Shown: positions 4,857 to 20,857 of the stretch, one piece after another
Layout of the letters: the number at the start of each line of letters is the position of its first letter
Numbering within the stretch: the first letter of the stretch is position 1
Virus record (IMG/VR): IMGVR_UViG_3300040801_001224
Coordinates: 1 to 64,000 of that record
DNA: 64,000 nucleotides
Direction: 5' to 3' (one strand)
Position numbers and translations under genes: made by a program
Notes under the pieces: model-generated
Told to the model about the DNA's origin: nothing
Database searches by the model: none
The model's input: only the letters and a program-made list of their open reading frames with translations

Positions 4857-5011
4857 CAAGGACTTAGGGTCATTACTTATGTAATACTTTCAAGGACTTA
4901 GGCTCGTTGGAAACTCTATTAAAATCAAGGGCTTAGGCTCATCTCTTTCTTCAATGAAATCAAGGGTTTAGGTTCACAGTTACCTCAGAATAAAATCAAG
5001 GGTTTAGGGTC
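4852..5011. repeat. array of five ~20-bp repeats (core TCAAGGRYTTAGGNTC) with unique 14-16 bp spacers
   Basis: Cores start at 4856, 4890, 4925, 4960, 4996; partial inverted copy at 5037-5044. Confidence 0.9.
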
Positions 5012-5151
5012 GGTACCAGGAATGGTTCCTTAAAGTGAGCCTAAGTTGTACCGGTCCGTCGGAGTTCCGGTCTAGATCATTCAGGCAACCGGGGTGTTTG
5101 TCTCGTCCCACCCCCCGGGACCTCCTCAGCGTTATTCCTAACTATACCACT

Positions 5152-5180
5152 ATTATAGCGAATTGGCTGGTCAATGTCAA
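5152..5180 (-). promoter_or_regulatory. reverse-strand sigma70 promoter pointing into the repeat array
   Basis: Minus strand TTGACA-N17-TATAAT followed by AGTGGTATAGTTAGGAA. Confidence 0.85.
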
Positions 5181-5276
5181 GAAAAGATATAAAAAGATAT
5201 GTCTAGATATGCCTGGACCATAATAGTAATTCTGGTTTTCCAATGATAAATAAAAGTACAGGGGGGGATATATAGT

Positions 5277-5450
5277 ATGTTAACTGGTCCGAATGGAGTC
5301 AAGTATAATATTAGATTTGAAGATGAGACCAGTGATGTAATACTGATATTACCCAATCACTCTGGTAAGAATACCGAGTTGAGATTTAACAGTGTCCGTG
5401 ATGTATTGGATTTCATTGGGCAGAAGAGCATAGCACAAAGAACAGCATAA
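5277..5450 (+). CDS. 57-aa hypothetical protein (not in ORF track), paralogue of the next gene
   Basis: MLTGPNGVKY...FNSVRDVLDFIGQKS; GATAAATA at 5245 and G-rich SD. Confidence 0.7.
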   Translation: MLTGPNGVKYNIRFEDETSDVILILPNHSGKNTELRFNSVRDVLDFIGQKSIAQRTA

Positions 5451-5466
5451 ACACACCGGGGGATAT

Positions 5467-5652
5467 ATGTTTCGCACAAAGCAAGGTTTACCATACGAAT
5501 TAGAGTTTGAATCTAACAACAACATAACTCTAGTACTATACAGACCAAATGGCAGGGCCGCTCGCGTTACACACTTCAAATCAATTCCAGACGTTCTAGA
5601 TTTCCTGGGTGAGGAAAGTCTAAACGAAGTATCTTTAGACCAAGTATCATAG
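5467..5652 (+). CDS. hypothetical protein
   Basis: FKSIPDVLDFLGEES shared with the upstream paralogue. Confidence 0.7.
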   Translation: MFRTKQGLPYELEFESNNNITLVLYRPNGRAARVTHFKSIPDVLDFLGEESLNEVSLDQVS

Positions 5653-5867
5653 AAGACCTTCTTTTGAGGGTTAAGGATTTAAGGGTATACATAGGTATGC
5701 CTTTATTGTATAACGATTATCACTAAAATCCGTAAAATATTATACTGAAATAGGGCAGTTTCATAGTATAATATTAATCAAATCACATGTTTTTAATCAA
5801 TTTGTTTTAAGAAAAGGGTGTTTTTTAGCACAAAATATTGACGTGTCAGAAAAGAGTCATTTAAGGG

Positions 5868-6302
5868 TCATTTAATAATGAACTTAGGGCGTTTAGATTT
5901 CTCTCCAGGCGCCCGTATGTAATACTTATCGGGACGTTTTCCATATGTTTCGGTAAGCTTAGGACGGTCTTTAACTACAGTATTCTGTATATAGTCTTTA
6001 GATAATAAAACTTTCTCCATTATAACTGAGCCATACTTACCACCGGTCTTTAAGTTATATGTGTCTGGACGCAACACATAGTATTCGTCTACATAATACT
6101 CTTCACGCTCTTCAGCAGTTTCCCGATCAGTAAATACTTCTAGTATACGTTTAATAAAATATGGTCTATCATTGTTATAAGCCCATGTAACAAATGTCCC
6201 GCTACCCATATAGTCATCATTCTCTGGGTCTACTGCTGAGCGGACGCCGATGTATTCCATGTTTGTTTTAGTGTTTATTAGTTTATAAATATAATGTTTC
6301 AT
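5868..6302 (-). CDS. GIY-YIG (Seg-like) homing endonuclease
   Basis: HYIYKLIN...EYIGVR...YMGSG...YNLKTGG; start MKHYIYK. Confidence 0.85.
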   Translation of the reverse strand: MKHYIYKLINTKTNMEYIGVRSAVDPENDDYMGSGTFVTWAYNNDRPYFIKRILEVFTDRETAEEREEYYVDEYYVLRPDTYNLKTGGKYGSVIMEKVLLSKDYIQNTVVKDRPKLTETYGKRPDKYYIRAPGEKSKRPKFIIK

Positions 6303-6380
6303 AATAATACTTATCATATGTACGATCAGTTATGTAGAGTGAACGGTTGACTTCCGGTCTACCATTTGCTATAATGTGTT

Positions 6381-6671
6381 ATGGATCTAAAAGAAGAAAA
6401 CTTTAGTATATACGTTGCGCTAGTAAGCTTTACCCTATCTCTGGGTGCTATCGTGTGGCTTCACTGGTGGGTTGGCATTGTGACATTCATCTGTTGTGTG
6501 ATTGGCTTTGCCATATTCGTAGACCGTTACTACACTAAAGAGATTAAGATTATATCCCCATTCCCAGTTAAGCTTGAAGGCCAGTGGCGATTTGTGTTCT
6601 ACGTTATACGTGGTAGCTATATGGTAACACCCGAGCGGCTATTGATGGATAAAATTAAAAATAGTGGTTGA
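6381..6671 (+). CDS. membrane protein
   Basis: Two hydrophobic segments; TTGACT-N17-TATAAT ends 5 nt before the ATG. Confidence 0.75.
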   Translation: MDLKEENFSIYVALVSFTLSLGAIVWLHWWVGIVTFICCVIGFAIFVDRYYTKEIKIISPFPVKLEGQWRFVFYVIRGSYMVTPERLLMDKIKNSG

Positions 6672-6720
6672 CATCCACTATTAATGTTGTTATACTTCTG
6701 GAAATAGTTAGGAGAAACAC

Positions 6721-7005
6721 ATGAAATATTTTGCAGAGTTCTATAGGGCACCATTAAAATCATATCCACAGCGTAACCCAGAGACTGGCCGTTACGAAGT
6801 TATGCCTAATCCCGACCCAGAGTTGCCAGTACCAGTGTGTGGTACTAATGGCCATTTAATACTGGACGGTCGCAAGAGCAAGTATAGCCACATGTCACAG
6901 GCTCGTGCCGTTGCTGAAGCCAATGGTTGGGTGGCATATCAGATTGTGAAGGGTGAAACGTTTACCCGCAACACTCAGGCAGTCACACCAGTAATGTACA
7001 TTTAA
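6721..7005 (+). CDS. early hypothetical protein
   Basis: Own promoter and AGGAG SD. Confidence 0.85.
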   Translation: MKYFAEFYRAPLKSYPQRNPETGRYEVMPNPDPELPVPVCGTNGHLILDGRKSKYSHMSQARAVAEANGWVAYQIVKGETFTRNTQAVTPVMYI

Positions 7006-7069
7006 AAATAGTGGTTGACACGACCACTTCTTGATAGTATAATGGTTCTAAACAGTTAGGAGAACAATT

Positions 7070-7435
7070 ATGTTAGTATTTACAGAAAGCCCAGGTTTAA
7101 CTACAGACGGTACTGGTTTTTGGAGTACATCTGAACTTACAGTAACAGTAGAAAAGTTAGACCTATCCTCAAATATTAAACGTGACTTTGGTGAGTTGCG
7201 TGTTATATTTGACACTGATACTTGGGACGTACAGATGGAAGGTCTCATTTATACAGACAAAGGTTTTATGACCGAGCTTAAAGCGTTACTGGAAGCCAAT
7301 GGTTTAGACGCCAGTGATATTGGTTACAGTGAACAAGGTATGCAGGGCGAGAACTATGTTAGCCTGGATGTTGGTGAGAACTTTATTGGCTCATGGTTGG
7401 ATCGTGGCATTGACTTTGAGGAGTACAACTTCTAA
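7070..7435 (+). CDS. early hypothetical protein
   Basis: Own promoter and SD; LIYTD and YSEQGMQG segments. Confidence 0.85.
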   Translation: MLVFTESPGLTTDGTGFWSTSELTVTVEKLDLSSNIKRDFGELRVIFDTDTWDVQMEGLIYTDKGFMTELKALLEANGLDASDIGYSEQGMQGENYVSLDVGENFIGSWLDRGIDFEEYNF

Positions 7436-7668
7436 TGTTACAGTTATTTGCTGAACAACTTAACGCGGTTTACCTAGTAACAGGTAGGCCGCTCATTACA
7501 TTCCCCTTGAACGACGAGCAGTCTTACCTAATGGCTCTGGAGTTACGTAGAGCTCAACAAGGATTAACTGCCCAGGTTAGACAGTTTGGGGTTAATGAAG
7601 ACATGATAGAGCTTGCTGAGTTCTATCAGAACGTTTACGAAGAACTCGTGGAGTTAACTAATGAATAA
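7435..7668 (+). CDS. hypothetical protein
   Basis: TAATG coupling. Confidence 0.75.
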   Translation: MLQLFAEQLNAVYLVTGRPLITFPLNDEQSYLMALELRRAQQGLTAQVRQFGVNEDMIELAEFYQNVYEELVELTNE

Positions 7669-7762
7669 CAGAAAGAACTTTAAGGACGCATTGGTCATTG
7701 GCGTCATTGTTGTATTGGCGTTCACTTACTTTGGTGACATCTTTGCTACGGTGGTTATATGA
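7661..7762 (+). CDS. 33-aa membrane peptide (not in ORF track)
   Basis: SD GGAG; MNNRKNFKDALVIGVIVVLAF... Confidence 0.6.
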   Translation: MNNRKNFKDALVIGVIVVLAFTYFGDIFATVVI

Positions 7763-7929
7763 AGCCCGGCATGTTGTTTGTTGCCAGCTTAATGTTAATG
7801 TTCTGGCTGGGATTGGGCCTAGCCATTGCTATGCTGTTTGTGATTAACATCTTTGTTGGCCTAGCCATAGCACTTGGTTTAGGTATAGTAGCGGCATTTA
7901 TTTTATATTATATCGGACAAAGTGGTTGA
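7759..7929 (+). CDS. 56-aa membrane protein (not in ORF track)
   Basis: ATGA overlap; two hydrophobic helices; stop lies inside the next -35 box. Confidence 0.65.
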   Translation: MKPGMLFVASLMLMFWLGLGLAIAMLFVINIFVGLAIALGLGIVAAFILYYIGQSG

Positions 7930-7990
7930 CATAGTGGTCTGACTTTGTTATAATACGTCTATACTTAGTTAATAATGTACAGAGGTTATT

Positions 7991-8323
7991 ATGCAGGTCA
8001 CAAGAGATTGGATGATTAACTACATTGAGACTCGGGATCAAGCGCAAGTTAACCAGATGGTTGGTAGAGCATTAGTTCAAATATTTAAACGACAGACTGA
8101 TCACGAGCAGAGAGTTAACGACACTAATGTCTGGAATGACATTGGCTTCAGCGCAAGTGACGCATACTCTGGCAGTATCTGTGCTAAGACATTCATGAAG
8201 CGTGGTGCTCTAATTGACTTCCAGTTGGAGAAATGGTTAAAGCCCACACAACATGGCTACCCACGTATCACTAAATATTGGAAACAATTAAACGAAATCG
8301 CACAGAATAAAAAGAGTGGTTGA
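7991..8323 (+). CDS. early hypothetical protein
   Basis: Own promoter; SD GAGG. Confidence 0.85.
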   Translation: MQVTRDWMINYIETRDQAQVNQMVGRALVQIFKRQTDHEQRVNDTNVWNDIGFSASDAYSGSICAKTFMKRGALIDFQLEKWLKPTQHGYPRITKYWKQLNEIAQNKKSG

Positions 8324-8373
8324 CAAGTGGATACTATTTTGCTATACTGCTTATATACAGTTAGGAGAGTATC

Positions 8374-8583
8374 ATGAAATTTAATCATAGCGAATTAAGT
8401 AACGCATTAGAAACACACCTACTCAATGTAGAAGATTGTAATCTACTTGATTACGATGTGGACGGTGTACTGAACAATAAGGTTCTTGGTACAGTGGGAT
8501 TTGAAGCCATCGACGGACATAGCTCATGGGAGGCAGAGTTCGAATATAACATGGTTACAAAAAAAGTAGAATCAATTGGATAA
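8374..8583 (+). CDS. early hypothetical protein
   Basis: Own promoter and SD. Confidence 0.8.
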   Translation: MKFNHSELSNALETHLLNVEDCNLLDYDVDGVLNNKVLGTVGFEAIDGHSSWEAEFEYNMVTKKVESIG

Positions 8584-8650
8584 GTGGTTGACAGGACCAC
8601 TTTCTGATAGTATAATGTCGGTTATCAATTAAACAGTTAGGAATAATTAT

Positions 8651-9739
8651 ATGCCGTTAGTACGCATTATTTCCGGAACCTTCAAGCATGGTTCCAAAGT
8701 CACTCCAGTTAGCAACATCGTTGTAGAGCAAGCAAAAGCCTACAGTGTTGATGAGCGTAGTGGCCCACATGTCACTGTTATGGGTGATGCCAAGTATGGA
8801 CTTCCAAATCGTAAGTGTCGCATATGTGTTACAGGTCCTGAAGACTTTGTAGTACTTGATGATGGTGCTGAGGTGCCAGCAGTAGACACTCGCACAGCAC
8901 AAGAGAAGTTCTTCGCACAAGAGTCAGACGAAGCGGCTATGTCACGCATTGCCAAGAGCTTTGACATCCTCAATGAGATTACAGACGCGGCTGCCCAGGG
9001 TATTATTCGTGGCGTAGTTGTAAGCGGCCCACCAGGTATTGGTAAGTCGTATGGTGTTACTCGAACACTGGAGCAGGCTAACTTCACACGGTCTATTGCT
9101 AACCAGACTGAGAACTATGAGATTATATCAGGTAGCATGACCCCAATTGGTCTATACAAGAAGCTGTACTTGAACCGACATAAAGGTTTTGTTACTGTAC
9201 TTGACGACTGTGACACAGCACTCTTTGATGAGGCTAGCCTTAACTTACTCAAAGCGGCACTGGACACTACAGAGCGTCGTAGACTGTTCTGGTTGTCAGA
9301 GTCACATGCTCTGGCTAAAGAAGACATTCCAGACTGCTTTGACTTTGAGGGTTCCATCGTGTTCCTGACCAACCTGGACTTTGAAGATGTCAAGTCAAGC
9401 AAGCTCCAAGCACACTTGTCAGCGATACTGTCACGTTGTCACTACATGAACCTAGAGATTAGCACAGTACGTGACCAGCTCCTACGTATACGTCAGGTAG
9501 TTAAATTCGGTATGCTGGACAAGTATGCTCTTACTGGCGCACAGAAGCAAGAGGTTGTTGACTTTGTTATTGACAATGTAGACGACATGAAAGAATTAAG
9601 CTTACGTGCTGTGATCAAGATCGCTGACTTAGCTGAAGCTGACAGCAAGGGTTCACTCCAACGTAGCTGGAGAGAGTTAGCAGAGATGACCATGTTAACT
9701 AAAGAATCATACTACAAGCGGCAGTTAGCTAAAATATAG
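8651..9739 (+). CDS. AAA+-type P-loop ATPase
   Basis: Walker A GPPGIGKS, Walker B TVLDDCD, sensor-like FLTN, arginine-finger-like AILSRC. Confidence 0.9.
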   Translation: MPLVRIISGTFKHGSKVTPVSNIVVEQAKAYSVDERSGPHVTVMGDAKYGLPNRKCRICVTGPEDFVVLDDGAEVPAVDTRTAQEKFFAQESDEAAMSRIAKSFDILNEITDAAAQGIIRGVVVSGPPGIGKSYGVTRTLEQANFTRSIANQTENYEIISGSMTPIGLYKKLYLNRHKGFVTVLDDCDTALFDEASLNLLKAALDTTERRRLFWLSESHALAKEDIPDCFDFEGSIVFLTNLDFEDVKSSKLQAHLSAILSRCHYMNLEISTVRDQLLRIRQVVKFGMLDKYALTGAQKQEVVDFVIDNVDDMKELSLRAVIKIADLAEADSKGSLQRSWRELAEMTMLTKESYYKRQLAKI

Positions 9740-9802
9740 GTTGACAAGATGGTTAAAATACGCTATACTATATATAATGTAGAATCCCATAGGAAGAAGC
9801 CA

Positions 9803-9940
9803 ATGAAAGATTATGCAGACAGAAGCTGGACTACTAACGATAAACGTGAGAATTCACAGGGGAGTTGGATAGCTTTTGGTATACTAATGGTGCTCCTGGT
9901 AATCGGTAGTTCCGATATAGTAGAAAGACTGCTGTCCTGA
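9803..9940 (+). CDS. 45-aa single-TM protein
   Basis: SD AGGA; start MKDYADR; hydrophobic C-terminal half. Confidence 0.65.
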   Translation: MKDYADRSWTTNDKRENSQGSWIAFGILMVLLVIGSSDIVERLLS

Positions 9941-10020
9941 GTGAGACAATAAATCACTCTTCCTAACTGTACCCGACCAAGAGTCGGACTTAGCCCGGGT
10001 TAACCCCCGGGCATTTTTTT
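9939..10020 (+). ncRNA. candidate sRNA 2 / 3' UTR antisense to the early-gene RBS leader
   Basis: Unpaired TTCCTAACTGTA (9960-9971) between hairpins GAGTGA/TCACTC and CCGAC/GTCGG, then a terminator. Confidence 0.6.
9993..10020 (+). terminator. intrinsic terminator
   Basis: GCCCGGG-TTAACC-CCCGGGC-A-T7. Confidence 0.9.
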
Positions 10021-10109
10021 CTAAGTTACTGATTCCATTGACCTTTCATTTGTTGACATCCCCCGACCACTTTGCTATAATACACAGTATAAACAGTTAG
10101 GAGAGTAAG

Positions 10110-10325
10110 ATGGACACTGATAAAAGAAAACGTATATTAAGAGACCCTACTGGGTTTGTTCTTAGAACATGGCACGGTGGCCATCAAATTATGGCCAAGG
10201 GTGTAAAACGTTTGAGTGATCAGACCGTACAATTTGTCTATGACCCACTCTCTCCTAATCCAAAATATTATAATGTAAACATTGAACAAACAAACTTGTT
10301 GAATGATATAATAAAACGTAAATAA
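10110..10325 (+). CDS. early hypothetical protein
   Basis: Own promoter and SD. Confidence 0.8.
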   Translation: MDTDKRKRILRDPTGFVLRTWHGGHQIMAKGVKRLSDQTVQFVYDPLSPNPKYYNVNIEQTNLLNDIIKRK

Positions 10326-10389
10326 GTGGTTGACTTCATTACCACTTTCTTGCTATAATACACGTATAGTAAATAAACAGGTACACGTT

Positions 10390-10821
10390 GTGGAATACGA
10401 TCCATTATTAACAGTTAAAGGCACTCGGTCAAAGAAGCTCATAGACTATATTGGTCGCGTATACGATCACTTGGGCTTAGATGCTTTTGTTGAGGTTACA
10501 CTTGTTAAAGAACTACGTGGTGGTGCCCAGGGTTATGCTAACGGTGATGAAGAGACTGTTGACATAGACATTGCTCGCACAGCAGATGGTAGACGTCTAT
10601 CACGTGAGCGTGTTATGATCAACATAGCACATGAGATGATACATGCCCAGCAGTATAATCACGAGCGTATGATCAACGAAGGTATAAGTGTTAAGGATGG
10701 TATGCTTGTTTCAGTCGTTAACTGGGAAGGTACACAGTACATTGGCACACCATATGAAGAGCAACCCTGGGAATTGGAAGCATATACCAACGAAGAACGA
10801 GTATACGAGGCCTGCAAGTGA
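10390..10821 (+). CDS. putative zinc metallopeptidase (HExxH)
   Basis: IAHEMIHAQQY plus downstream PWELEAY; likely GTG start after the promoter. Confidence 0.75.
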   Translation: MEYDPLLTVKGTRSKKLIDYIGRVYDHLGLDAFVEVTLVKELRGGAQGYANGDEETVDIDIARTADGRRLSRERVMINIAHEMIHAQQYNHERMINEGISVKDGMLVSVVNWEGTQYIGTPYEEQPWELEAYTNEERVYEACK

Positions 10822-11063
10822 AAAATGTCCTGGGCATATTGGGTATAGCTATTGCGAGCGTTGCTCTCTTAGCCAGTGTCCTGATCATGTTCGAACAGCC
10901 CGAGCCTAAAGTTATTATTAAAGAGGTTCCCGTAGAGGTGATCAGAGAGCGTCTTGTAAACCCATGTGAACAGCATGGTATGACAGTATCCTACGTCAAG
11001 GAAGTCAAGTACTTTACTGGTGAAGTTCGAATTGGTATTGTTTGTAAGAAGGTTGACACATAA
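10818..11063 (+). CDS. membrane-anchored or secreted small protein
   Basis: N-terminal hydrophobic helix; Cys pair. Confidence 0.75.
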   Translation: MKNVLGILGIAIASVALLASVLIMFEQPEPKVIIKEVPVEVIRERLVNPCEQHGMTVSYVKEVKYFTGEVRIGIVCKKVDT

Positions 11064-11109
11064 TACCCACTTATGTTAAACTATATTTTTATTTAATGAG
11101 GTGAATAAA

Positions 11110-11310
11110 ATGGATAAAGTATCAGTGTTCCTTGGAATCGTAGTAGTTGTATTACTTGTTATGGCATTGGTAACCTACCCCTTCATGTGGGCTTGGAACT
11201 ATGGCATGGTTGTAGCTTTCCCAATGTTAGGAACACTTGAACCACTGCAAGCTTTCTCGGTATTGGTTGTGTTTGCGTTCATGAAGTCAAATACCAGCAA
11301 CTCCAAGTAA
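11110..11310 (+). CDS. membrane protein
   Basis: SD GAGGTG; YPFMWAWN segment; two TM segments. Confidence 0.75.
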   Translation: MDKVSVFLGIVVVVLLVMALVTYPFMWAWNYGMVVAFPMLGTLEPLQAFSVLVVFAFMKSNTSNSK

Positions 11311-11378
11311 TCAAAAAAAAGTGGTTGACATTACCACTTACCTATTATATAATATAGGAAATAGTTAGGAGAATAATT

Positions 11379-11708
11379 ATGTTAATATTCAGTAAAGATG
11401 GTTACACAGTAGAAAAGATCTGGGGTGGCCCAGCTGGTGACCGTATTGAATTCAGTCACCCTGACACTGCTATCCCTGAAGAGTATATCGACAACATCTC
11501 AGCTGGTATACGTGTAGCACAAGACCAAGAGCTTATTGAAGAGCTCAAGCGAGAAGTCGCTAGTGAGTTACAGTTAACAAACTATGAAGAGATTGTTGCT
11601 ATTGACTTCTTTGAAGTTATTTGGGAAGAGCGTATTAAAGGCGTCGTTGACATTGAATGTACGACAACTGGCCGAGTAATTGATCAAGAGTTTGATATTA
11701 AACTATGA
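11379..11708 (+). CDS. early hypothetical protein
   Basis: Own promoter and SD. Confidence 0.8.
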   Translation: MLIFSKDGYTVEKIWGGPAGDRIEFSHPDTAIPEEYIDNISAGIRVAQDQELIEELKREVASELQLTNYEEIVAIDFFEVIWEERIKGVVDIECTTTGRVIDQEFDIKL

Positions 11709-11909
11709 TATCCTGGATAGCAAACAATGAGAGAGTCTATGCCCCCACAAGGGACATAGCTCTCAGCCTGTTTAGTCTAAAAGGGTATACGGTCAATATA
11801 GATGACATCAAGTACTGTGGCCCAGAGAGACGCAAAAAGAAACGCAAATAGTGGTTGACATGTGGACCTAGTGATGTTATCATGTGGTAAATAGTTAGGA
11901 GTTAACACA

Positions 11910-12026
11910 ATGAAAAAAGTAAAAACCAACAACCCAGTTGCTAAATACGATTTCAATCGTGGTGGCTTCCATACCCCTAGCAAGTTCACCCGCAAAATCA
12001 AACACAAAGGTAAAAGATATGAATAG
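11910..12026 (+). CDS. 38-aa basic peptide, ArfA-like (not in ORF track)
   Basis: MKKVKTNNPVAKYDFNRGGFHTPSKFTRKIKHKGKRYE; own promoter and AGGAG SD. The ORF is well supported; the function is tentative. Confidence 0.55.
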   Translation: MKKVKTNNPVAKYDFNRGGFHTPSKFTRKIKHKGKRYE

Positions 12027-12210
12027 TAATTTAATGCGTCTCATCAAGACTGACGTGTATGCAGTTGTGACAGACGGTGCTAACGTATACGTTTACGAGA
12101 GTATCGACTGTGACAGCAACTATAATGAATTAGTCGGCGTATACGAAAGCATTGATAAGTTTATTGAAGCAGGTCTCCCCTGGGAAAAACCTACAGAAAA
12201 AGTAGCATAA
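12019..12210 (+). CDS. hypothetical protein
   Basis: Start MNSNLMR overlapping the previous peptide. Confidence 0.7.
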   Translation: MNSNLMRLIKTDVYAVVTDGANVYVYESIDCDSNYNELVGVYESIDKFIEAGLPWEKPTEKVA

Positions 12211-12280
12211 AGTGGTTGACAAGTGGATACCACTTTGCTATAATACACTTATACAGTAAACAAACAGTTAGGAAAAAGTT

Positions 12281-12838
12281 ATGTCAACGAACGCAACCAT
12301 TTCAGTTATTACCCCTGAAGGCAAAGTATTATCAGTATACAACCATTGGGATGGCTATCCTGATTATTTACTTGATATGCTGACCAAGCACTACAACACA
12401 CTAACCGACGCAATGGCACTGGTTAAGCCAGGCAACATTAGCTCGGTACGTGAGCGTTGTGATGGTGATGTAGGGCACACATTTAACAACCCAATCCCTG
12501 ACCAAACCATTTATTATGGTCGTGACCGTGGTGAGAAAAACCAGGAACCAATGGTACAGGATTTAGCTACATTCGATATTAGCAAGCACCTATTTGGTGG
12601 GCGCCAGGAATATAACTACATCTTTGCTAACGGCCAGTGGATGCACCTACATGAATGGGAGGCTGAGCAGGAGGCTACTAATGAAGTTGAAGACTTTGTT
12701 GGTGATGTTGTTGAGCAAATCCGGGATGACCTAAAGCGGGATGAAACCGGTGCTGTATACGAGTTAATCGAATACTTACACTGCCTGGCTAACCCAGCTG
12801 TTGACGATATCCTTAAGAACTACTTACCCCAGGACTAG
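12281..12838 (+). CDS. conserved phage hypothetical protein
   Basis: MSTNATI...YNHWDGYP...EYNYIF motifs; own promoter. Confidence 0.85.
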   Translation: MSTNATISVITPEGKVLSVYNHWDGYPDYLLDMLTKHYNTLTDAMALVKPGNISSVRERCDGDVGHTFNNPIPDQTIYYGRDRGEKNQEPMVQDLATFDISKHLFGGRQEYNYIFANGQWMHLHEWEAEQEATNEVEDFVGDVVEQIRDDLKRDETGAVYELIEYLHCLANPAVDDILKNYLPQD

Positions 12839-12997
12839 GAGTAACCATGTTATTGTATATTACGTTCACATTATTCTTCGGTAGTGTTATTGGTTTAGTC
12901 ACTAACGAATCCCTAAATTAATTTAAGAAAGTGGTTGACAAGGCCACTTTCTTTTGTTATAATACAGGCATAAGTTAAACAGTTAGGAGTAAAACTT

Positions 12998-13345
12998 ATG
13001 GAAAACTTAATAGACATTTACGCAGAAGCCCGTCAAGCGGCGATTGATGCCTCCAACAACGAAGAGATGGCTTGGAGACTGGCTGGTCGTATGGATGCTT
13101 GTGGCTTTGCTAGTGTTAAGATCTACAAGTACAACGACAAGACCATCCGTTCTAACTCAAAGCTTGGCAAAGCCCTGGAGCAGTTAGGCATCAAGAAATC
13201 ATCTTATGAACGTTGCTATTCATGGTGGAACCCAAGCGAGAATCCCACGCAAGAGATTTCTGTTAAAGAAGCTGGCGCCCGTGCGGCGGCGGAAGTCCTA
13301 AAGAAGTATGGCTTCACAGCATATCTCGACAGTCGCTTAGACTAA
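12998..13345 (+). CDS. conserved phage hypothetical protein
   Basis: CGFA...KEAGARA...SRLD motifs; own promoter. Confidence 0.85.
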   Translation: MENLIDIYAEARQAAIDASNNEEMAWRLAGRMDACGFASVKIYKYNDKTIRSNSKLGKALEQLGIKKSSYERCYSWWNPSENPTQEISVKEAGARAAAEVLKKYGFTAYLDSRLD

Positions 13346-13421
13346 AAAATAACTGTTGAAAGTGGTTGACATCTGTTGACCACTTTGCTATAATAGCTCT
13401 ACAAACAGTTAGGAGATTAAC

Positions 13422-13688
13422 ATGAAATTAACAGGTGAAGCTTACAACAAAGTCCGTGCTGACATTTACATCACAATGGAAGACCAGGGCCTGGGTACCG
13501 ACCTCTTAAACATTATGGACATGAAAGAAGTGCGTCCTAATGTATACGTTGCTATCACAGAAGATTGCTATGATGACACCTACGTTGTGAGCGAGTTCGA
13601 TATGTCTCAGAAGCAGATCAACTTATCACAGCCTTATGCTGTTCGCAACAACTATCCAGAAGCACAACATTTTTTCAACAATTGTTAG
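13422..13688 (+). CDS. early hypothetical protein
   Basis: Own promoter and SD. Confidence 0.8.
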   Translation: MKLTGEAYNKVRADIYITMEDQGLGTDLLNIMDMKEVRPNVYVAITEDCYDDTYVVSEFDMSQKQINLSQPYAVRNNYPEAQHFFNNC

Positions 13689-13697
13689 GAGCTAATC

Positions 13698-13916
13698 ATG
13701 TCACAGTTTGCAGATTTAGTTAGAGATTTTAAGACCCGCGTGGATTCAGGTAAAATAGAACTTGATGCCGCCGCTGATTTATTTGTTGATGTTATTCAAT
13801 CATTGGAGTGGGATTTGGAAGATTATATGACTGGTGACTTTGACAGTTTCGATAACTATGCTGAGTATCGTGAAGAAGAGATTAAGATTGCCACTCGTTT
13901 AATTAAAGGAAAATAG
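13698..13916 (+). CDS. acidic hypothetical protein
   Basis: SD TTAGGAG. Confidence 0.8.
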   Translation: MSQFADLVRDFKTRVDSGKIELDAAADLFVDVIQSLEWDLEDYMTGDFDSFDNYAEYREEEIKIATRLIKGK

Positions 13917-13982
13917 TGGTTGACAACGGTTAACCACTTTGCTATAATACGGTTATAAGTTAAACAGTTAGGAGTAAAACTT

Positions 13983-14324
13983 ATGCAGGACCAAATTCAA
14001 GAATTAGTAGAAGCAATCGTTGAAGACTTCCGCCAGTGGAGTGGACGTTCTAAAACACTTAACGGTTTTGGTTATGACCTGGACGAGCATGTACAGGAAT
14101 TTGCTGACGAGATTAGAGTTAAGCCTGGTCGCAAGTATATCAAGATCATTAAAGAAAATTGTGTTTGGGGTTTCATCGTTAACACTGACACTGACAAGAA
14201 GTTCCGCAAGGGAGACATCCTTAAAGCGGCTGGTTATAACGCACCGGCACGTAACCAAGCACGTGGTAACATCCTGGACGGTGGTTACGAAATTAACTGG
14301 ACTGGACCTTCATACCTTCGTTAA
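13983..14324 (+). CDS. conserved phage hypothetical protein
   Basis: GRKYIKI...GDILKAAGYNAPA..ARGN motif; own promoter. Confidence 0.85.
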   Translation: MQDQIQELVEAIVEDFRQWSGRSKTLNGFGYDLDEHVQEFADEIRVKPGRKYIKIIKENCVWGFIVNTDTDKKFRKGDILKAAGYNAPARNQARGNILDGGYEINWTGPSYLR

Positions 14325-14327
14325 CAT

Positions 14328-14346
14328 AAGGGGGCTTAGCCCCCTT
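14328..14346. terminator. hairpin terminator between convergent genes
   Basis: AAGGGGGC-TTA-GCCCCCTT. Confidence 0.75.
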
Positions 14347-15043
14347 TACACTTTCCGCCTTTATGATATTTGGTCCACATAGATGGATTTATTTCATCTT
14401 TACCACACACAGGACACCATCGCTTAACTTTCCATCTATTAGCTTCTTTCATTTTGGCTATGTCTTCTGGAGTTCTTGCCACACCTTTCTTTAAATCACT
14501 AAGTATTTTCTTCTGATGATCAGGACATGGTTTCATAACCTGTTTGGCTCTTGCATCTTTTATCTTGGCGCGAGCTTCTGGTGAATGGGTCTTGCCGTAG
14601 AAGTGATTGTTCTCACCTTTACTCATTTCTGATATACGAGTTTTATGTTCTTCAGTATGCTTCTTGCCATAAAACGGATTGTTTTTGCCACCGTTCTGTT
14701 TAGAAATGACCTTGGCTAGTTCAACTTTATTATGTTCGTATACTCTGGCAGTTATAGGTGTTTCGTAGTTGATCTTGAGAGTCGACATACGCATAGCATT
14801 AAGAGCTGTAACCATCTTCGCTCTGTCCTTACCAGTAGTCATATATTTAAGTAACCAATGACAGATAAAGTGTTCTCTTGGTGTTAGCAGTACTAGATTA
14901 TCTTTGCTGTTATCTCCACCTAATGACTTTGGGATTATATGGTGACTCTCGTAGTACTCGCCATTGCCTTTGGATCTTTTCTCTTGACTTCGAGAGTTGA
15001 TGATGTTATAATAGGTGGTAGTGTATTTGTTTTGTATAAACAT
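14336..15043 (-). CDS. HNH homing endonuclease with NUMOD3 repeats
   Basis: ESHHIIPKSLGG...NLVLLTPREHFICH; NPFYGKKHTEE and NHFYGKTHSPE. Confidence 0.9.
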   Translation of the reverse strand: MFIQNKYTTTYYNIINSRSQEKRSKGNGEYYESHHIIPKSLGGDNSKDNLVLLTPREHFICHWLLKYMTTGKDRAKMVTALNAMRMSTLKINYETPITARVYEHNKVELAKVISKQNGGKNNPFYGKKHTEEHKTRISEMSKGENNHFYGKTHSPEARAKIKDARAKQVMKPCPDHQKKILSDLKKGVARTPEDIAKMKEANRWKVKRWCPVCGKDEINPSMWTKYHKGGKCKGG

Positions 15044-15113
15044 AATTGCTGATACTCCTTGTTAGTATTAGAGTAGTCGGGACTGCCATCCGCGGACTAC
15101 ACCCTTATTTATC
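15044..15113 (-). promoter_or_regulatory. late-type promoter and structured 5' leader of the HNH gene
   Basis: GATAAATA; hairpin GTAGTC...GACTAC; hairpin ATACT...AGTAT over SD AAGGAG. Confidence 0.6.
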
Positions 15114-15125
15114 AGGAATGTATTT

Positions 15126-15359
15126 ATGATAGCAGAGGTACTGGGATATGTGGCGTTGGCATTCTTGCTATACGCCTACACCCACTCAGATATGTGGAAG
15201 CTCAGGATATTTGGATTCCTGGGCTCCGTTGTCTTCACAATTCAAGCAGGCATGGTGGAGCTACATAGTTTAGTGGTAGCTAATATAATCTTTGCCACCA
15301 TTCATTTATACCACCTAAGAAAACTACATTTAGATAAAAAAGTGGTTGACAATGGTTAA
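15126..15359 (+). CDS. small multi-TM protein (YgjV-like)
   Basis: Three hydrophobic segments; MWKLRIFGFLGSVVF. Confidence 0.65.
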   Translation: MIAEVLGYVALAFLLYAYTHSDMWKLRIFGFLGSVVFTIQAGMVELHSLVVANIIFATIHLYHLRKLHLDKKVVDNG

Positions 15360-15404
15360 CCACTTTGCTATAATAGTGGTATAGTTAGTTAGGAGTTAAA
15401 CAAA

Positions 15405-15593
15405 ATGAGATTTGTAGATTACAACGGTAAAGAACGCATTATAGTCCCACACAACGAGGACTATGATTGCTTAACCCGCACTCGTATCCTACACAATGTA
15501 CGTGGTACGCAGTTTGAAGTTAACGAGCATGGCGGTGTTTACAGAGTCCACCCATGCAGTGGTAAGCGCATTAAGATAGGTAACTTGTTATGA
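15405..15593 (+). CDS. early hypothetical protein
   Basis: Own promoter and SD. Confidence 0.8.
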   Translation: MRFVDYNGKERIIVPHNEDYDCLTRTRILHNVRGTQFEVNEHGGVYRVHPCSGKRIKIGNLL

Positions 15594-15868
15594 GACCATT
15601 AGCAGAGTTTTGCGAATACATGGTAAAGTCAGCGACTGATGCCAAGCAGTACTTCACAGCTGAAACATACGCAGACCTTAACGCACGATTTGGTCACATG
15701 AAGAACGATGTTGCTCACAGCCACTTGCTCAAGTTAGAGCGAGAGTTAACAGAAGTTATGAACAACACAACAACTTCTATTGACCCTGAGCATGGTGTTG
15801 CGTGGACTCAACGTTGCGATGTACAGCAAGCTATTCGCTGGATGGAAGGCAAAGTTAATCTAAAGTAG
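15590..15868 (+). CDS. hypothetical protein
   Basis: ATGA overlap. Confidence 0.75.
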   Translation: MRPLAEFCEYMVKSATDAKQYFTAETYADLNARFGHMKNDVAHSHLLKLERELTEVMNNTTTSIDPEHGVAWTQRCDVQQAIRWMEGKVNLK

Positions 15869-15877
15869 AAAACGATT

Positions 15878-16060
15878 ATGAAACTTCAAGAAGACATTAA
15901 GAGACACGTAAAAGACGAGAAGTATTTGAGTATTGTTAAACTGACTGATATATTTGACGCAGTAGTTGAACAGGCACATGCTAACTTTGGTAATTTTGAT
16001 GAGTACACCAACAACTTCTTACGCCAAGCATTAGAGGAATCTATTAAAGAAAAAGGCTAA
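15878..16060 (+). CDS. hypothetical protein
   Basis: Fills the gap in the operon. Confidence 0.7.
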   Translation: MKLQEDIKRHVKDEKYLSIVKLTDIFDAVVEQAHANFGNFDEYTNNFLRQALEESIKEKG

Positions 16061-16131
16061 AATAGTGGTTGACATCCCAACCACTTATTGCTATAATAGT
16101 GGCATAAGTTAATAAACAGTTAGGAAAAACG

Positions 16132-16416
16132 ATGGAACTATTAGACAAAATTGCACTCATATTAGGATACCTTGTAATGGTAGGCGTGGGTGTATTAATT
16201 GTAGCAATTGTACTGGAACAGATCGTTAGTTACCGTAATGACCATGAGTTCTTTACGTTAACTATATTTAAATTTGGTGTTGTGTACGCTCGCAGTGAGC
16301 AAGCACAATGGAAGATTGAAGCATACAGACCATCAGCTAAGGGTAAGCGAGTACACTTCTCAGCACCCATGTGGTTTAACAAGATTTTTAATAACGTTGG
16401 TGGACGTGAAGTATAG
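16132..16416 (+). CDS. membrane-anchored hypothetical protein
   Basis: Own promoter; N-terminal TM segment. Confidence 0.8.
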   Translation: MELLDKIALILGYLVMVGVGVLIVAIVLEQIVSYRNDHEFFTLTIFKFGVVYARSEQAQWKIEAYRPSAKGKRVHFSAPMWFNKIFNNVGGREV

Positions 16417-16447
16417 TCCACTCAGTATCTAAACCGAGGAAAAGAAA

Positions 16448-16816
16448 ATGAACCTGGCACAAGAATTAGTAGCAAACCGAAAAACAATCGCTGAAGCAAA
16501 TAACGCTGAGAAGAGATCTTATGGCGTTAAAGTAGAAGCGGCAGTTGGCGACTTAAAAGTTAAAAAGAACCTACGTACACGAGAAGTACCACAGGAACTG
16601 GCTCGTAAGTCTCCAGAACTCCCCGGACTGGGTAAAGTATCACGACGTAAGACAGACAACCCACTGGTTAAAGAGTTACTGGCTAACGGTGAAGTCATTG
16701 GTGAAGCAGTAGACACTCGTAAAGAGAAGCGTTGCTGGACTATTACTATCAATGGTAAGACAATTGAATGTCACACAATCAGCAAAGGCATTCGTCAGTA
16801 TGGAGCGCAATCATAA
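16448..16816 (+). CDS. basic hypothetical protein
   Basis: SD GAGGA. Confidence 0.8.
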   Translation: MNLAQELVANRKTIAEANNAEKRSYGVKVEAAVGDLKVKKNLRTREVPQELARKSPELPGLGKVSRRKTDNPLVKELLANGEVIGEAVDTRKEKRCWTITINGKTIECHTISKGIRQYGAQS

Positions 16817-17061
16817 TGGATAAGAAAACTGGATTCCTATTTGTAAGACTGGTACTGATTACCTGGGCATTTAGTGTGGCACTGTTTCTAACATTTGCTG
16901 GTCCTGGTAAAGACCTACAGTTCTACACCACTATTATTGTACTCATGGGTGTAATCAGTATAACACTTGCTCCATTCATGGCACAGATCAATGACATGGC
17001 ACAGAGTGCTATTGATCGGATGTTGAACAATGAAGATAGTAAACAGTCTAAAGAGTCTTAA
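16816..17061 (+). CDS. membrane protein
   Basis: TAATG coupling; two TM segments. Confidence 0.75.
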
Positions 17062-17152
17062 GAACCGTCCCGGCTGTAAAATAGTACGCAGACGTGGCAA
17101 GGTATTTGTAATCAACAAAGAGAACCCAAAGTTCAAAGCGAGACAACGATGA
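17030..17152 (+). CDS. rpmJ: 50S ribosomal protein bL36, zinc-independent (YkgO/RpmJ2-like) type; not in ORF track
   Basis: [40 protein letters not shown] matches bL36 end to end; ATGA-coupled to the next gene. Confidence 0.92.
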
Positions 17153-17400
17153 AATACGTAGAAGCAATCAACCAGTACCAACTATGCGGATGTAAGAACA
17201 TTGTTGTTCGCACACGATCCGGTAAAGAGTATGAGTTGAACCGAGACGTAGTTGAGAACGCACATGAAGAAAACGGTGACCTATATGTATATGGTGGTTA
17301 CTGGAAGAAAGTTCGCACAGCATTGAGACCCAAGTACCACCACAAATGGTTCTGGTTATCAAATGTAGAGTTTGTCCGACAGGGAGGACTGACACAGTGA
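17149..17400 (+). CDS. hypothetical protein
   Basis: ATGA overlap with bL36. Confidence 0.75.
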
Positions 17401-17618
17401 TAAACAACAAAGCAACATATGTCTGTTCTAAAAGCCATCTGGTTATAGAGCGAAATGAACATAAGCTATTCCTAAATCTGGGTGAGCTTGATGAACGACA
17501 GATAGTTCCACTGGATGCTGGTACACAGTACCTCAGAGGTGAAACCATTACTGGTGACCAACTGGAAAAGATCTGGGGGTTTTATTCTGACGTTGAAACT
17601 TATTGGTATGAAGCATGA
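17397..17618 (+). CDS. hypothetical protein
   Basis: GTGA overlap; SD GGAGG. Confidence 0.7.
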   Translation: MINNKATYVCSKSHLVIERNEHKLFLNLGELDERQIVPLDAGTQYLRGETITGDQLEKIWGFYSDVETYWYEA

Positions 17619-17857
17619 AACTATTAGCTGAAAATTATAACACCAAAGTCTACCAGAAAGACAACGATAAGCCTGGTCTCCTGATCATTCATCAGGGTGA
17701 ACCAGGTGACACTCGTGACACTCTCGTAGCCAACCTATCAGGTATATGGCCAAACACTGGTAAGTACTTACTAACCAGAGTGACTAAACGTGATGGCGCA
17801 TTCGACAGCCATTGGACTGGTTTTATTCCCTCCTATAAAATGCCCGATTTATCTTAA
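17615..17857 (+). CDS. hypothetical protein
   Basis: ATGA overlap. Confidence 0.75.
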   Translation: MKLLAENYNTKVYQKDNDKPGLLIIHQGEPGDTRDTLVANLSGIWPNTGKYLLTRVTKRDGAFDSHWTGFIPSYKMPDLS

Positions 17858-17921
17858 AAAAGTGGTTGACATGTGGTCCTAGCTTTGCTATAATGTGTTT
17901 ATACAAAGTTAGGAGTTAACC

Positions 17922-18212
17922 ATGTTAAGCAAAAAACAACTATTCATCTCACTGGACGAGTTCTATAACGATCGTTATGGATACGGTGAGTCAGCTTACC
18001 AGCTACAAGAGTTAAGCCATCCTTTTATCAGCAATGAGACTTATGGTCGCAAGAGCATGATATACATTCACACTGGTGACCTAGACATTCGCAAGAAGTT
18101 AGAGAGCTGGTTAGATGCTGATGGCTTTCGAGTAAACCGTAATTATGCTAAAGGCAACCCAGTAACTGAAGTTCAAGTTAGTTACTTCAAGGGTTGGCAC
18201 TGGGCGGAGTAA
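17922..18212 (+). CDS. early hypothetical protein
   Basis: Own promoter and SD. Confidence 0.85.
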   Translation: MLSKKQLFISLDEFYNDRYGYGESAYQLQELSHPFISNETYGRKSMIYIHTGDLDIRKKLESWLDADGFRVNRNYAKGNPVTEVQVSYFKGWHWAE

Positions 18213-18216
18213 GAAC

Positions 18217-18399
18217 ATGAATAATTATATAGTGACAGGTGAGTATGGCAACCAAGTGGGTGACCGTATCGAACTAGCACTAACTGCCAAGAACGAAACT
18301 AACGCCAGTAAGAACTTTGTTAAGCGTGTTAAGTCTGGTGAGTTTGGTTACATCGACACTAACTACATGACAGTAAACGTAGAGAAGGTATCAAAATGA
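18217..18399 (+). CDS. hypothetical protein
   Basis: SD GGAG. Confidence 0.75.
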   Translation: MNNYIVTGEYGNQVGDRIELALTAKNETNASKNFVKRVKSGEFGYIDTNYMTVNVEKVSK

Positions 18400-18626
18400 G
18401 ATATGTAAAGACTATCAACTTATGGGCTGAAGGAGTACAAGACAAACTCCGTTCAGGTGAACTTAAACCTCAGCGTGGTCAGTGGATGATCTGTGGTGAA
18501 GACAACCAATACAAGTGTCGCTTTGTTAAAGCTGACGAGCGTAGCATTTGGGTAATCCATAAGAAGCCAGGTTGTGGTAAAGCATTTATAGAACTGTGCC
18601 GTAACTGGAGGGAGCAAACAGCATGA
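18396..18626 (+). CDS. hypothetical protein
   Basis: ATGA overlap. Confidence 0.75.
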   Translation: MRYVKTINLWAEGVQDKLRSGELKPQRGQWMICGEDNQYKCRFVKADERSIWVIHKKPGCGKAFIELCRNWREQTA

Positions 18627-18868
18627 ATATACTAAACCCATCCTTATCCCTGCAAGAGATAATTGATGCGACTACAAGAATCATTATTTATGTTGCGACC
18701 GGATTTAGCCTTGCCAGTGGTATTTCGTTCTCAAGTTTGGTGCCTGACTATATGTTCTTATTGCCCATTATGGTTATGGCACTGATGATCGGCAGTCTTC
18801 TAGGCGCAGTGATTGCTGATCATATATTTGATGTGTGGGAAAAGAAGTATTACAAGTACCGAAAATAG
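18623..18868 (+). CDS. membrane protein
   Basis: ATGA overlap; two TM segments. Confidence 0.75.
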   Translation: MNILNPSLSLQEIIDATTRIIIYVATGFSLASGISFSSLVPDYMFLLPIMVMALMIGSLLGAVIADHIFDVWEKKYYKYRK

Positions 18869-18929
18869 TGGTTGACATGTGGTCAACCCTTTGCTATAAT
18901 AGTGGCATAAACAGTTAGGAGAAACAATT

Positions 18930-19586
18930 ATGTTTACTAGATCAACTATCAAAGTCCAAGACATACTTCGTGGTTATGCTCGCATTAACTACCAGGTAGA
19001 TGGCTACTGGAGTCGTGAAACAATCACTATATATGTTGACCGCAGGATGGACTGGGAAACCAAGAAAGCTATCTGGGTAGCCAATGTTAATCATTCAACA
19101 GGTGGTCGCGATACAGAGCAGGTTGCTGATGACAACCAAGCCACTCGCAACTTTGCTACTGCTCTTATGGATGCCGCTTATCAAGCAGACCTAATCATGG
19201 CACAGTCAGAAGGTTTAGAGCTTGCTTACAGGGCTAGTCAGAAAGCACAAGAGTTGAAAGAGCTGTATGCCGAAGCTGAGTTCCAGGCTAAGTTGGAACA
19301 GGATCTACCAATAGGAATGGATATGGCTACCAAGATCATCGACGACTTGCGTAACGAAGTTAAAGTTGGTCTCGAGAAGGATCCCTGGTTATGTCAGAGT
19401 AAACGCATAACATTGCGCTCACGTGTTACAAACTACGAGAACGAGATCTGTGCGTACACTACTAACAGTGCTAATCCAAAAATACGGTTTAGAGTTAATG
19501 GTGAATCAGTAGGCATTATCTGGGCCAAAGAGTTTGTTGCCAACATGAGCGCGAACAACAGCATGGCGGCCAAATTGGTCGCTTAG
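18930..19586 (+). CDS. early hypothetical protein
   Basis: Own promoter and SD; 218 aa. Confidence 0.85.
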   Translation: MFTRSTIKVQDILRGYARINYQVDGYWSRETITIYVDRRMDWETKKAIWVANVNHSTGGRDTEQVADDNQATRNFATALMDAAYQADLIMAQSEGLELAYRASQKAQELKELYAEAEFQAKLEQDLPIGMDMATKIIDDLRNEVKVGLEKDPWLCQSKRITLRSRVTNYENEICAYTTNSANPKIRFRVNGESVGIIWAKEFVANMSANNSMAAKLVA

Positions 19587-19597
19587 GAGTTAAGACA

Positions 19598-19834
19598 ATG
19601 ACAACTCGTAACACAAGAGAAGAACTTGAAAACTCAGTACACCAATATGGTGCTGAAGTAACTCGCTTACAAGCCAGACTGGATGAGCTTGAAGGTACTA
19701 TGAACTTTGGTGAAAGGGTTAAGCTCAGAGGTAATGGTGAGATCGTTGGTGAAGATACCAACACTCTTTTCGCAACATTTAACTATTATGCTGACGCCAA
19801 AGCATTCGTAGAATTAATCAATAATATGCGATAA
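19598..19834 (+). CDS. hypothetical protein
   Basis: SD TTAGGAG. Confidence 0.8.
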   Translation: MTTRNTREELENSVHQYGAEVTRLQARLDELEGTMNFGERVKLRGNGEIVGEDTNTLFATFNYYADAKAFVELINNMR

Positions 19835-19903
19835 AGTGGTTGACAACCACTCTTCCAGGCTGTATAATCCAGATATAAGTTAAACAGTTAAGGAATAAAC
19901 ATT

Positions 19904-20179
19904 ATGAACTCTCGTCACAAGCAAGCAATTGAATCAGTACTTAAAGAAATGAACTGGTATGCCAACATATTTGGTAAGGGTGAAGTTGTACCATTCCCAA
20001 CCAACGCTGAAGAGTGTGGTCGTATCCGTAGTTTCATTGAAGGACAACTGAGTCCAGAGAACTTACATTGTGATGGTGAAGCTGACCCAATGTACGTTAG
20101 ACAACGTTACAATGAACTGAACACTGCCTGGGATGCCCTGGCATTAATCGATGGCAACCAAGCTGAACCAATGGTATAA
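19904..20179 (+). CDS. conserved phage hypothetical protein
   Basis: LSPENLHCDGE motif; own promoter. Confidence 0.85.
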   Translation: MNSRHKQAIESVLKEMNWYANIFGKGEVVPFPTNAEECGRIRSFIEGQLSPENLHCDGEADPMYVRQRYNELNTAWDALALIDGNQAEPMV

Positions 20180-20189
20180 GGAGAGGAAC

Positions 20190-20354
20190 ATGAGCATGGA
20201 ACCCACCGACAAAGAAATCGAAAAGTATATGAAAGAGCATAATGAGAACTATTATGCCGCTCGAGAAGTTCTTCGTGAACGAGCGTATGGCAAGAAGTAT
20301 GGCAATGATAAGCCAGCACATCAAAGCTGGGGTGATTACTGGAAAGGATATTAG
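20190..20354 (+). CDS. hypothetical protein
   Basis: SD AAGGAG; start MSMEPTD. Confidence 0.75.
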   Translation: MSMEPTDKEIEKYMKEHNENYYAAREVLRERAYGKKYGNDKPAHQSWGDYWKGY

Positions 20355-20417
20355 TGGTTGACATGTGGTCTTAATGGATGTATAATCACGATATAAGTTA
20401 AACAGTAAGGAATAAAG

Positions 20418-20854: not shown

Positions 20855-20857
20855 TCC

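Follow-up and report, generated by a model that had tools for sequence, protein, structure and literature searches.

Why would a phage genome carry, in a single place, the exact complement of a leader sequence shared by many of its early genes? The question was raised by an initial annotation of the first 64,000 nucleotides (hereafter, the window) of IMGVR_UViG_3300040801_001224, a 328-kb contig from an uncultured, jumbo myovirus-like phage. In this window, a minus-strand block from about 32 to 64 kb encodes baseplate, tail-fibre and other virion proteins, whereas bases 5–21 kb hold small plus-strand genes, most of them with their own perfect sigma70-type promoter; 15 promoters match TTGACA-N17-TATAAT at 12 of 12 positions and nine more at 11 of 12. 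The annotation described an element of around 80 nt at positions 9939–10020, on the plus strand, and proposed that it specifies a trans-acting small RNA, transcribed from a late promoter, that silences the early genes as a set. We first examined whether the sequence supports this description, and found that every sequence statement and coordinate given for the element holds.

The 82-nt element starts with hairpin 1 (9939–9959), a 6-bp stem formed by GAGTGA (9939–9944) and TCACTC (9954–9959) with the 9-nt loop GACAAUAAA, which overlaps the stop codon (TGA, 9938–9940) of a 45-aa ORF. It is followed by the unpaired stretch TTCCTAACTGTA (9960–9971), by hairpin 2 (9973–9987), with a 5-bp stem of CCGAC (9973–9977) and GTCGG (9983–9987) and the loop CAAGA, and by an intrinsic terminator (9993–10020), in which GCCCGGG (9993–9999) pairs with CCCGGGC (10006–10012) across a 6-nt loop and precedes seven T at 10014–10020. 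The predicted minimum-free-energy structure is exactly this one, with −30.4 kcal/mol and z = −4.8 against 200 shuffles. The unpaired stretch, or seed, has a mean probability of being unpaired of 0.96, and opening it costs 0.1 kcal/mol in the 82-nt element and 1.2 kcal/mol in the 244-nt transcript expected from the nearest promoter. This terminator was the only hit with seven G-C pairs and a T7 tail in positions 5000–21000, and is thus the only strong intrinsic terminator in 16 kb of early region, as is typical of small RNA genes.

The core of the seed, TCCTAACTGT (9961–9970), is the exact reverse complement of ACAGTTAGGA. This 10-mer occurs ten times on the plus strand and once on the minus strand, the latter at 9961–9970, whereas only 0.19 matches are expected in the whole window and none of 100 shuffles reached 11. 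The plus-strand copies are at 7052–7061 (8 nt before the ATG), 8357–8366, 8633–8642, 10093–10102 (in the leader of the gene immediately downstream of the element), 12264–12273, 12979–12988, 13405–13414, 13964–13973, 16116–16125 and 18911–18920; those at 8633, 12264 and 16116 are followed by an A that extends the match to 11 nt. Three further plus-strand leaders, at 6704–6713, 11361–11370 and 11891–11900, carry the AUAG variant ATAGTTAGGA, which would pair through one G-U, and there is also a true minus-strand cassette with this variant at 5136. The number of early genes with the motif on their ribosome-binding site is thus ten, or 13 if the variant is counted. When aligned, the plus-strand copies belong to a single cassette, aGTGG-TTGACA-N17-TATAAT, 8–20 nt, ACAGTTAGGA(G/A), and 6–9 nt to the ATG, so that in this phage the motif is both the start of the mRNA leader and the Shine-Dalgarno (SD) sequence. 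The longer pairing of 14–15 nt with one bulge that had been noted at 8357 and 10093 is real, but it requires opening the 3′ arm of hairpin 1.

The element lies in the 3′ UTR of the 45-aa ORF (9803–9940), which contains one hydrophobic helix and is preceded by a sigma70-type promoter (9741–9769, TTGACA-N17-TATACT); there is no promoter next to hairpin 1. This promoter lacks the GTGG...CCAC inverted repeat seen in most early cassettes, and its transcript would have a degenerate, non-canonical leader that pairs poorly with the seed. Further upstream, an early cassette promoter (8588–8616) and its leader (8633–8642) precede a 362-aa gene (8651–9739) related to T4 NrdC.10 and to a PA5oct protein. 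No terminator separates this gene from the element, so its mRNA should also end at 10020.

One minus-strand copy of a 10-mer in 64 kb is not impossible by chance (about 0.1 expected), and true minus-strand cassettes do exist, at 5136 in the window and at 4067 in L025 (contigs of related phages are designated here with L numbers); the match could therefore be accidental, or the relic of an inverted promoter cassette lying in an ordinary terminator region. However, no TTGACA or TATAAT remnant lies upstream of the motif on the minus strand. To evaluate these possibilities we searched for relatives. Nucleotide comparisons with GenBank phages found nothing similar to the element or its neighbours, and the first protein-anchored scans of IMG/VR and of JGI metagenome contigs returned only the window's own contig or nothing. 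In contrast, homologues of the 362-aa protein in a large protein collection, and the contigs encoding them, gave relatives with 93 to 51% protein identity. PA5oct, the nearest cultured relative by this protein (45–52%), has only 44 nt after the gene and no room for the element. L178 carries the gene at the contig end and L037 lacks the cassettes, so neither is informative.

Five further sequence variants of the same three-hairpin element (type A) were found in related uncultured phages: in L017 and L018 (86% relatives), in L021 to L023 (69%), in L032 and L033 (which carry a 98% identical peptide), and in L027 (68%), where the element follows a different ORF. The linked NrdC.10-like proteins of the five compared with the window (L032, L017, L018, L021 and L027) are 68–93% identical to that of the window. 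Peptides homologous to the 45-aa product occur in L017, L018, L021 and L032, while in L027, and in the more distant L025, L034 and L038, the RNA occurs without this ORF. In all six variants TCCTAACTGT is invariant and unpaired (probability 0.93–0.98), although the sequences of the three stems differ and remain fully canonical. All five core pairs of hairpin 1 show compensatory changes, with 100% of cells paired, values that 0 of 500 shuffles reached, whereas slid controls collapse to 20–50% paired; the loop consensus AGACAUUAAAC is also conserved, although its complement is not enriched in the window (13 matches against 14 expected). Hairpins 2 and 3 also change on both sides, the stem of hairpin 2 being replaced by GGCC/GGCC, GCCC/GGGC or GGGC/GCCC, always fully paired; MAFFT could not align these two hairpins in register, and their pairs were counted by script from a manual segmentation. 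The terminator with a U-tail is likewise present in L017, L018, L021 and L032, but in L027 the module sits inside an operon and its third hairpin lacks a U-run, and hence a free-standing small RNA is not universal. Flanking positions give no clean co-variation within type A; L032 has a G after the seed although the one leader on that short contig has an A at the facing position. A covariance model built from the family found one copy per genome fragment, including exactly one in the window (76 bits, E 2e-14), and none in the unrelated contigs that share the cassette. Pattern scans for the RNA core (loop TAAA, seed and a G+C hairpin) gave no hits in viral contigs and four in metagenomes, three of them in coding sequence and one, in L031, with 24.9 bits.

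A seed that was paired, or not conserved, in relatives keeping the leader had been set beforehand as evidence against the proposal, and the comparison came out in its favour. Chance or a relic are contradicted by these data and appear very unlikely. It is also very unlikely that the motif works as a minus-strand leader and ribosome-binding site for a 48-aa minus-strand ORF (9811–9957), even though ACAGTTAGGA is followed 3 nt later by GTG on that strand. There is no promoter, since the sequence just upstream is the terminator hairpin, and the 3-nt spacing differs from the 6–9 nt of all real cassettes; moreover, in relatives the start-codon context is not kept (ATG abuts GGA, or is absent) and the substitutions in hairpin 1 would rewrite the peptide, whereas the plus-strand peptide is conserved.

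The comparison also bears on the proposal that an independent small RNA starts at 9961 from a late promoter in the loop of hairpin 1, based on ATAAATC (9949–9955), which was said to be one base off a late-promoter motif. The heptamer is present and the loop is conserved in part, but ATAAATC as such is not conserved, because relatives have CATTAAAC, CTATAAAC and CTTAAAAC. Besides, TATAAATA occurs only six times in 64 kb, TATAAATA-like motifs do not mark the late genes of the window, and we found no shared motif in the upstream regions of late genes that were inspected. The compensatory changes in all five pairs show that hairpin 1 is selected as RNA, so that transcripts must begin upstream of it, and the late promoter is thus not supported and very unlikely.

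Within type A the leader core does not vary, and the informative cases for co-variation of seed and leader are more distant relatives. In L025 and L034-36 (61–63% identity) the cassettes read TATAAT-gtatat-ACACAGTTAGGAA; the distance from the −10 is fixed, so the motif is the 5′ end of the transcript, and a separate SD follows. Directly after the NrdC.10-like gene, these genomes have a hairpin, an unpaired (U)AACUGUGUA and a terminator. This seed is the complement of UACACAGUU(AG), the 5′ end of their own leader variant, over 9–11 nt and shifted 4 nt toward the 5′ end of the leader, and the stems again differ by compensatory changes. In L038 (51%) the leader is tTGCACAGTTAGGAAa and, seven nt after the stop codon of the gene, there is a GC-rich hairpin whose loop holds TTCCTAACTGTGCAA, a 15-nt exact complement of its own leader variant TTGCACAGTTAGGAA; we estimate the chance of such a match in a 6.6-kb contig at about 1e-5. 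L190 (46%) has a hairpin over the stop codon, 30 unpaired nt and a terminator, with a weaker 9-bp match to its own AGGUAGGAGAUG leader. Against the proposal, relatives with a different leader (L026, L180, L183 and L214) show no anti-leader at this site. Scans for the L038-type and L034-type seeds gave more than 115 and 23 hits, respectively, but none lies on a contig with the promoter-leader cassettes, so all are chance. In every clade found the element lies just downstream of the NrdC.10-like gene, except in L027, where it is 1.5 kb away, and exactly one sense-orientation anti-leader was found in each genome fragment that carries one.

Together, we favour, with some confidence, that 9939–10020 encodes a conserved, terminator-ended module, here called an anti-leader RNA, in the 3′ UTR of early transcripts. 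In this view, it would be transcribed by the host sigma70 RNA polymerase from the promoter at 9741, in a transcript of about 245 nt that also encodes a 45-aa membrane peptide, and reached by read-through from the promoter at 8588; it may be trimmed to a species of about 80 nt. Two short hairpins would hold a 12-nt stretch single-stranded, which pairs over 10–11 contiguous bases with the leader ACAGUUAGGA(A/G) of at least 13 early mRNAs, with predicted net energies of −9 to −15 kcal/mol. Because in this phage the leader contains the SD AGGA(G), 6–9 nt before the start codon, pairing should block 30S binding and lower translation of the early set together, possibly also triggering decay, and the structured RNA probably outlasts its targets, so that repression would grow as early transcription fades. 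Our computations establish the structure, the accessibility of the seed, the complementarity, the conservation with compensatory stem changes and the co-variation of seed and leader between clades; that a discrete RNA accumulates and regulates its targets, that it acts in trans, that its effect is negative, and the timing are all inferred from sequence alone. There are also reasons for caution, because the RNA would be made from early promoters at the same time as its many strongly transcribed targets, and it may be outnumbered, and a simple late shut-off is not obvious. Likewise, a 10–11 bp A/U-rich duplex is modest, and bulged duplexes of −16 to −21 kcal/mol are common elsewhere in the window when accessibility and position are ignored; the argument therefore rests on contiguous pairing, position and conservation rather than on duplex energy. 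In all, the observation in the initial annotation is confirmed. Its interpretation is only partly supported, because a functional RNA element selected for complementarity to the early leader is well backed by the comparative data, whereas its promoter is not and action in trans and silencing remain inferences.

The same pairing might instead occur in cis, with the anti-leader closing the long mRNA of the NrdC.10-like gene and the small ORF into a loop, for autoregulation or for protection of its ends. This is suggested by the position of the element downstream of a gene whose transcript begins with the canonical leader, with no terminator between them in the window, and because in L025, L034 and L038 there is no internal promoter, so every carrier RNA holds both partners. 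Nevertheless, we consider it unlikely, because the seed matches the consensus leader rather than that of its own operon (in L017, 9 nt with its own against 11 with the best; in L034, 8 against 11), which favours action in trans. Additionally, window-type phages add an internal promoter whose poorly pairing leader would free the seed for other partners, and an accessible seed cannot avoid pairing with a dozen identical leaders on other mRNAs. It is also conceivable, as mere speculation, that the lack of the inverted repeat and of a canonical leader lets the RNA escape both a putative operator-binding repressor and self-pairing. A further possibility, also unlikely, is that pairing has the opposite sign, and protects or activates early mRNAs, for instance by covering the 5′ end against entry of RNase E or pyrophosphohydrolase, or against an SD-cutting nuclease of the RegB type. 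Indeed, in L025/L034-type relatives the seed covers the first 9–11 nt of the transcript, upstream of a separate SD, and the RNA would be co-expressed with its targets; covering of the SD is thus a property of this phage and its near relatives, not of the whole family, and the common mechanism may concern the mRNA 5′ end, and hence stability, rather than SD occlusion. However, in the window phage, L017, L021 and L038 the duplex includes AGGA(A/G) 6–9 nt before the ATG, a position that, as established for small RNAs pairing within the ribosome-binding region, is expected to exclude the 30S subunit.

A broader hypothesis, which we regard as being about as likely as not, is that a clade of uncultured jumbo phages marks its early transcripts with a common 5′ leader and encodes a single anti-leader RNA that reads this mark by base-pairing. 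This would be an RNA-based, regulon-wide switch for a temporal gene class, in which seed and leader co-evolve from clade to clade, with seeds of 9 to 15 nt shifted along the leader and presented either between hairpins or in a hairpin loop. Temporal shut-off of early genes in large virulent phages is known to work through proteins, such as the RegB nuclease, the RegA repressor and modification of RNA polymerase, while very few phage small RNAs have known targets, and these mostly are host genes or a single phage operon. An RNA recognizing a leader common to a dozen or more early messages would be a new regulatory layer in phage development; it would explain why the leader is conserved beyond the SD, and would provide a compact, reprogrammable pair of leader and anti-leader that can be tested directly with reporters. 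The between-clade co-variation is the kind of evidence that normally comes only after experiments, and turns the idea into a directly testable hypothesis.

We found no description, in full-text searches of a literature library, of an RNA aimed at a leader shared by an early regulon, and no Rfam 15 family reached its gathering threshold in the window. The element resembles the 3′ UTR-derived base-pairing small RNAs of bacteria, such as CpxQ, SroC and DapZ. It also resembles the 3′ UTR-derived ncRNAs of the virulent Pseudomonas phages PAK_P3 and phiKZ (PMC10914365). As in these, it sits in the 3′ UTR and shares the terminator of the upstream mRNA, has an accessible seed followed by a terminator hairpin with a U-tail, and is conserved among relatives; the phage ncRNAs reported so far, however, have no assigned targets, whereas here the seed matches a leader shared by a whole temporal class of the phage's own genes and co-varies with it between clades. 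A lambda small RNA, in turn, acts on host genes (bioRxiv 10.1101/2024.10.31.621285). The c4 antisense RNA of phages P1 and P7 (PMC12197685) is also a structured phage RNA that presents short unpaired sequences complementary to a ribosome-binding region of phage mRNA, is made from the same transcript as a target and blocks translation. Yet c4 controls a single operon (icd-ant) for immunity in temperate phages, compared with at least 13 potential targets here in a virulent-type jumbo phage, and there is no sequence or structure similarity, its Rfam model giving no hit at the gathering threshold in the window nor at E up to 10 in 9730–10040. The T4 endoribonuclease RegB and translational repressor RegA (PMC3014915) follow the same logic, with one phage factor recognizing a short motif at or in the SD region of many early mRNAs and turning them off as a set; this is a comparison of logic and not membership. 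RegB and RegA are proteins, whereas here an RNA would recognize a 10–15 nt leader by Watson-Crick pairing. Multi-target anti-SD small RNAs, such as RsaE/RoxS with their C-rich seeds, the Burkholderia toxic sRNA (RF02278) and anti-hemB (RF02837), also have one seed complementary to the ribosome-binding sites of many mRNAs. The element shows a weak, sub-threshold similarity in overall architecture to RF02278 and anti-hemB, but the scores of 18.8 bits for RF02278 (gathering score of 50) and 20 for anti-hemB (49.5) are far below the gathering scores, so it is not a member; the other best sub-threshold Rfam hit was SorY, with 20.8 bits (111). Besides, those anti-SD seeds pair with the generic SD, and this one with a specific leader extending 5–10 nt upstream of the SD. 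Lastly, the cis-antisense RNAs lambda OOP and P22 sar also act by pairing with phage mRNA, but they are transcribed from the strand opposite their single target, whereas the anti-leader element and its 13 leaders are all on the plus strand, 70 nt to 9 kb apart.

Most early promoters in the window, including those at 6660-6682, 7010-7028, 8580-8610, 11319-11339, 12925-12953 and 18870-18888, carry an inverted repeat that embraces the -35 hexamer and that takes the form of either AGTGG-TTGACA-N3-9-CCACT or GGTTGAC...GTCAACC. This repeat looks like an operator for a dimeric protein or, alternatively, like a hairpin-forming promoter, and it is lacking in the promoter of the RNA element, at 9741. 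We also found a genuine early cassette on the minus strand, at 5136-5180 (TTGACA-N17-TATAAT-agtggt-ATAGTTAGGA), which points away from the early block of the plus strand, and this looks like a divergent early control region at about 5.2 kb.

Other IMG/VR contigs (L002, L004, L005, L008-L010, L012 and L014-L016), some of them with different GC content, carry the same GTGGTTGACA-N17-TATA(A/C)T cassette followed 6-7 nt later by A(C/T)AGTTAGGA. In those contigs a separate SD lies further downstream, and the motif seems to be a widespread transcript-start sequence, not only an SD. A search of those fragments with R1, the covariance model built from the family of RNA elements, did not find any anti-leader. 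In a more distant clade with the leader ACACATCGCAACAAGGAG, represented by contigs L183 (4166-4215) and L214 (3907-3955), one promoter has a spacer containing CTCCTTGTTGC, which is the reverse complement of its own leader, so that it forms a DNA palindrome around the -10.

Within the RNA element, the loop of hairpin 1 (window 9945-9953, and the same position in the related phage contigs L017, L018, L021, L027 and L032) is conserved, with consensus AGACAUUAAAC, although the stem is not. The complement of this loop is not enriched in the window, and it is possible that the loop is a binding site for a protein or a chaperone. Between the terminator and the next promoter there is also a conserved stretch, CTAAGTTACTGAT...CTTTCATTTG, located at window 10021-10052, at 1737-1775 in L017 and at about 424-455 in L032. 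This stretch is kept among the closer relatives, and might possibly be an upstream promoter element. Additionally, the minus strand of a 1.9-kb metagenome contig (L031, 869-935) holds TTCCTAACTGTG between a hairpin and a terminator-like stem. It scores 24.9 bits with model R1, but the contig has no cassettes, and it may be either a distant member or a chance match.

Two very large ORFs of 2918 and 1276 aa, at 46823-55579 and 55584-59414 of the minus strand, respectively, lie within the block of virion genes of the window. The window contains one copy of TGTGGATAA, as expected by chance, and shows no cluster of this sequence. Conversely, an intergenic region of the related phage L025 (3810-3875) contains three direct copies of TGTGGATAA within about 65 nt, and this sequence is the complement of the DnaA-box consensus TTATCCACA. 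Comparison with known phage protein families indicated that an ORF at 14336-15043 of the window, which is on the opposite (minus) strand inside the early gene block, is homing-endonuclease-like (phrog_655, E 1e-40).
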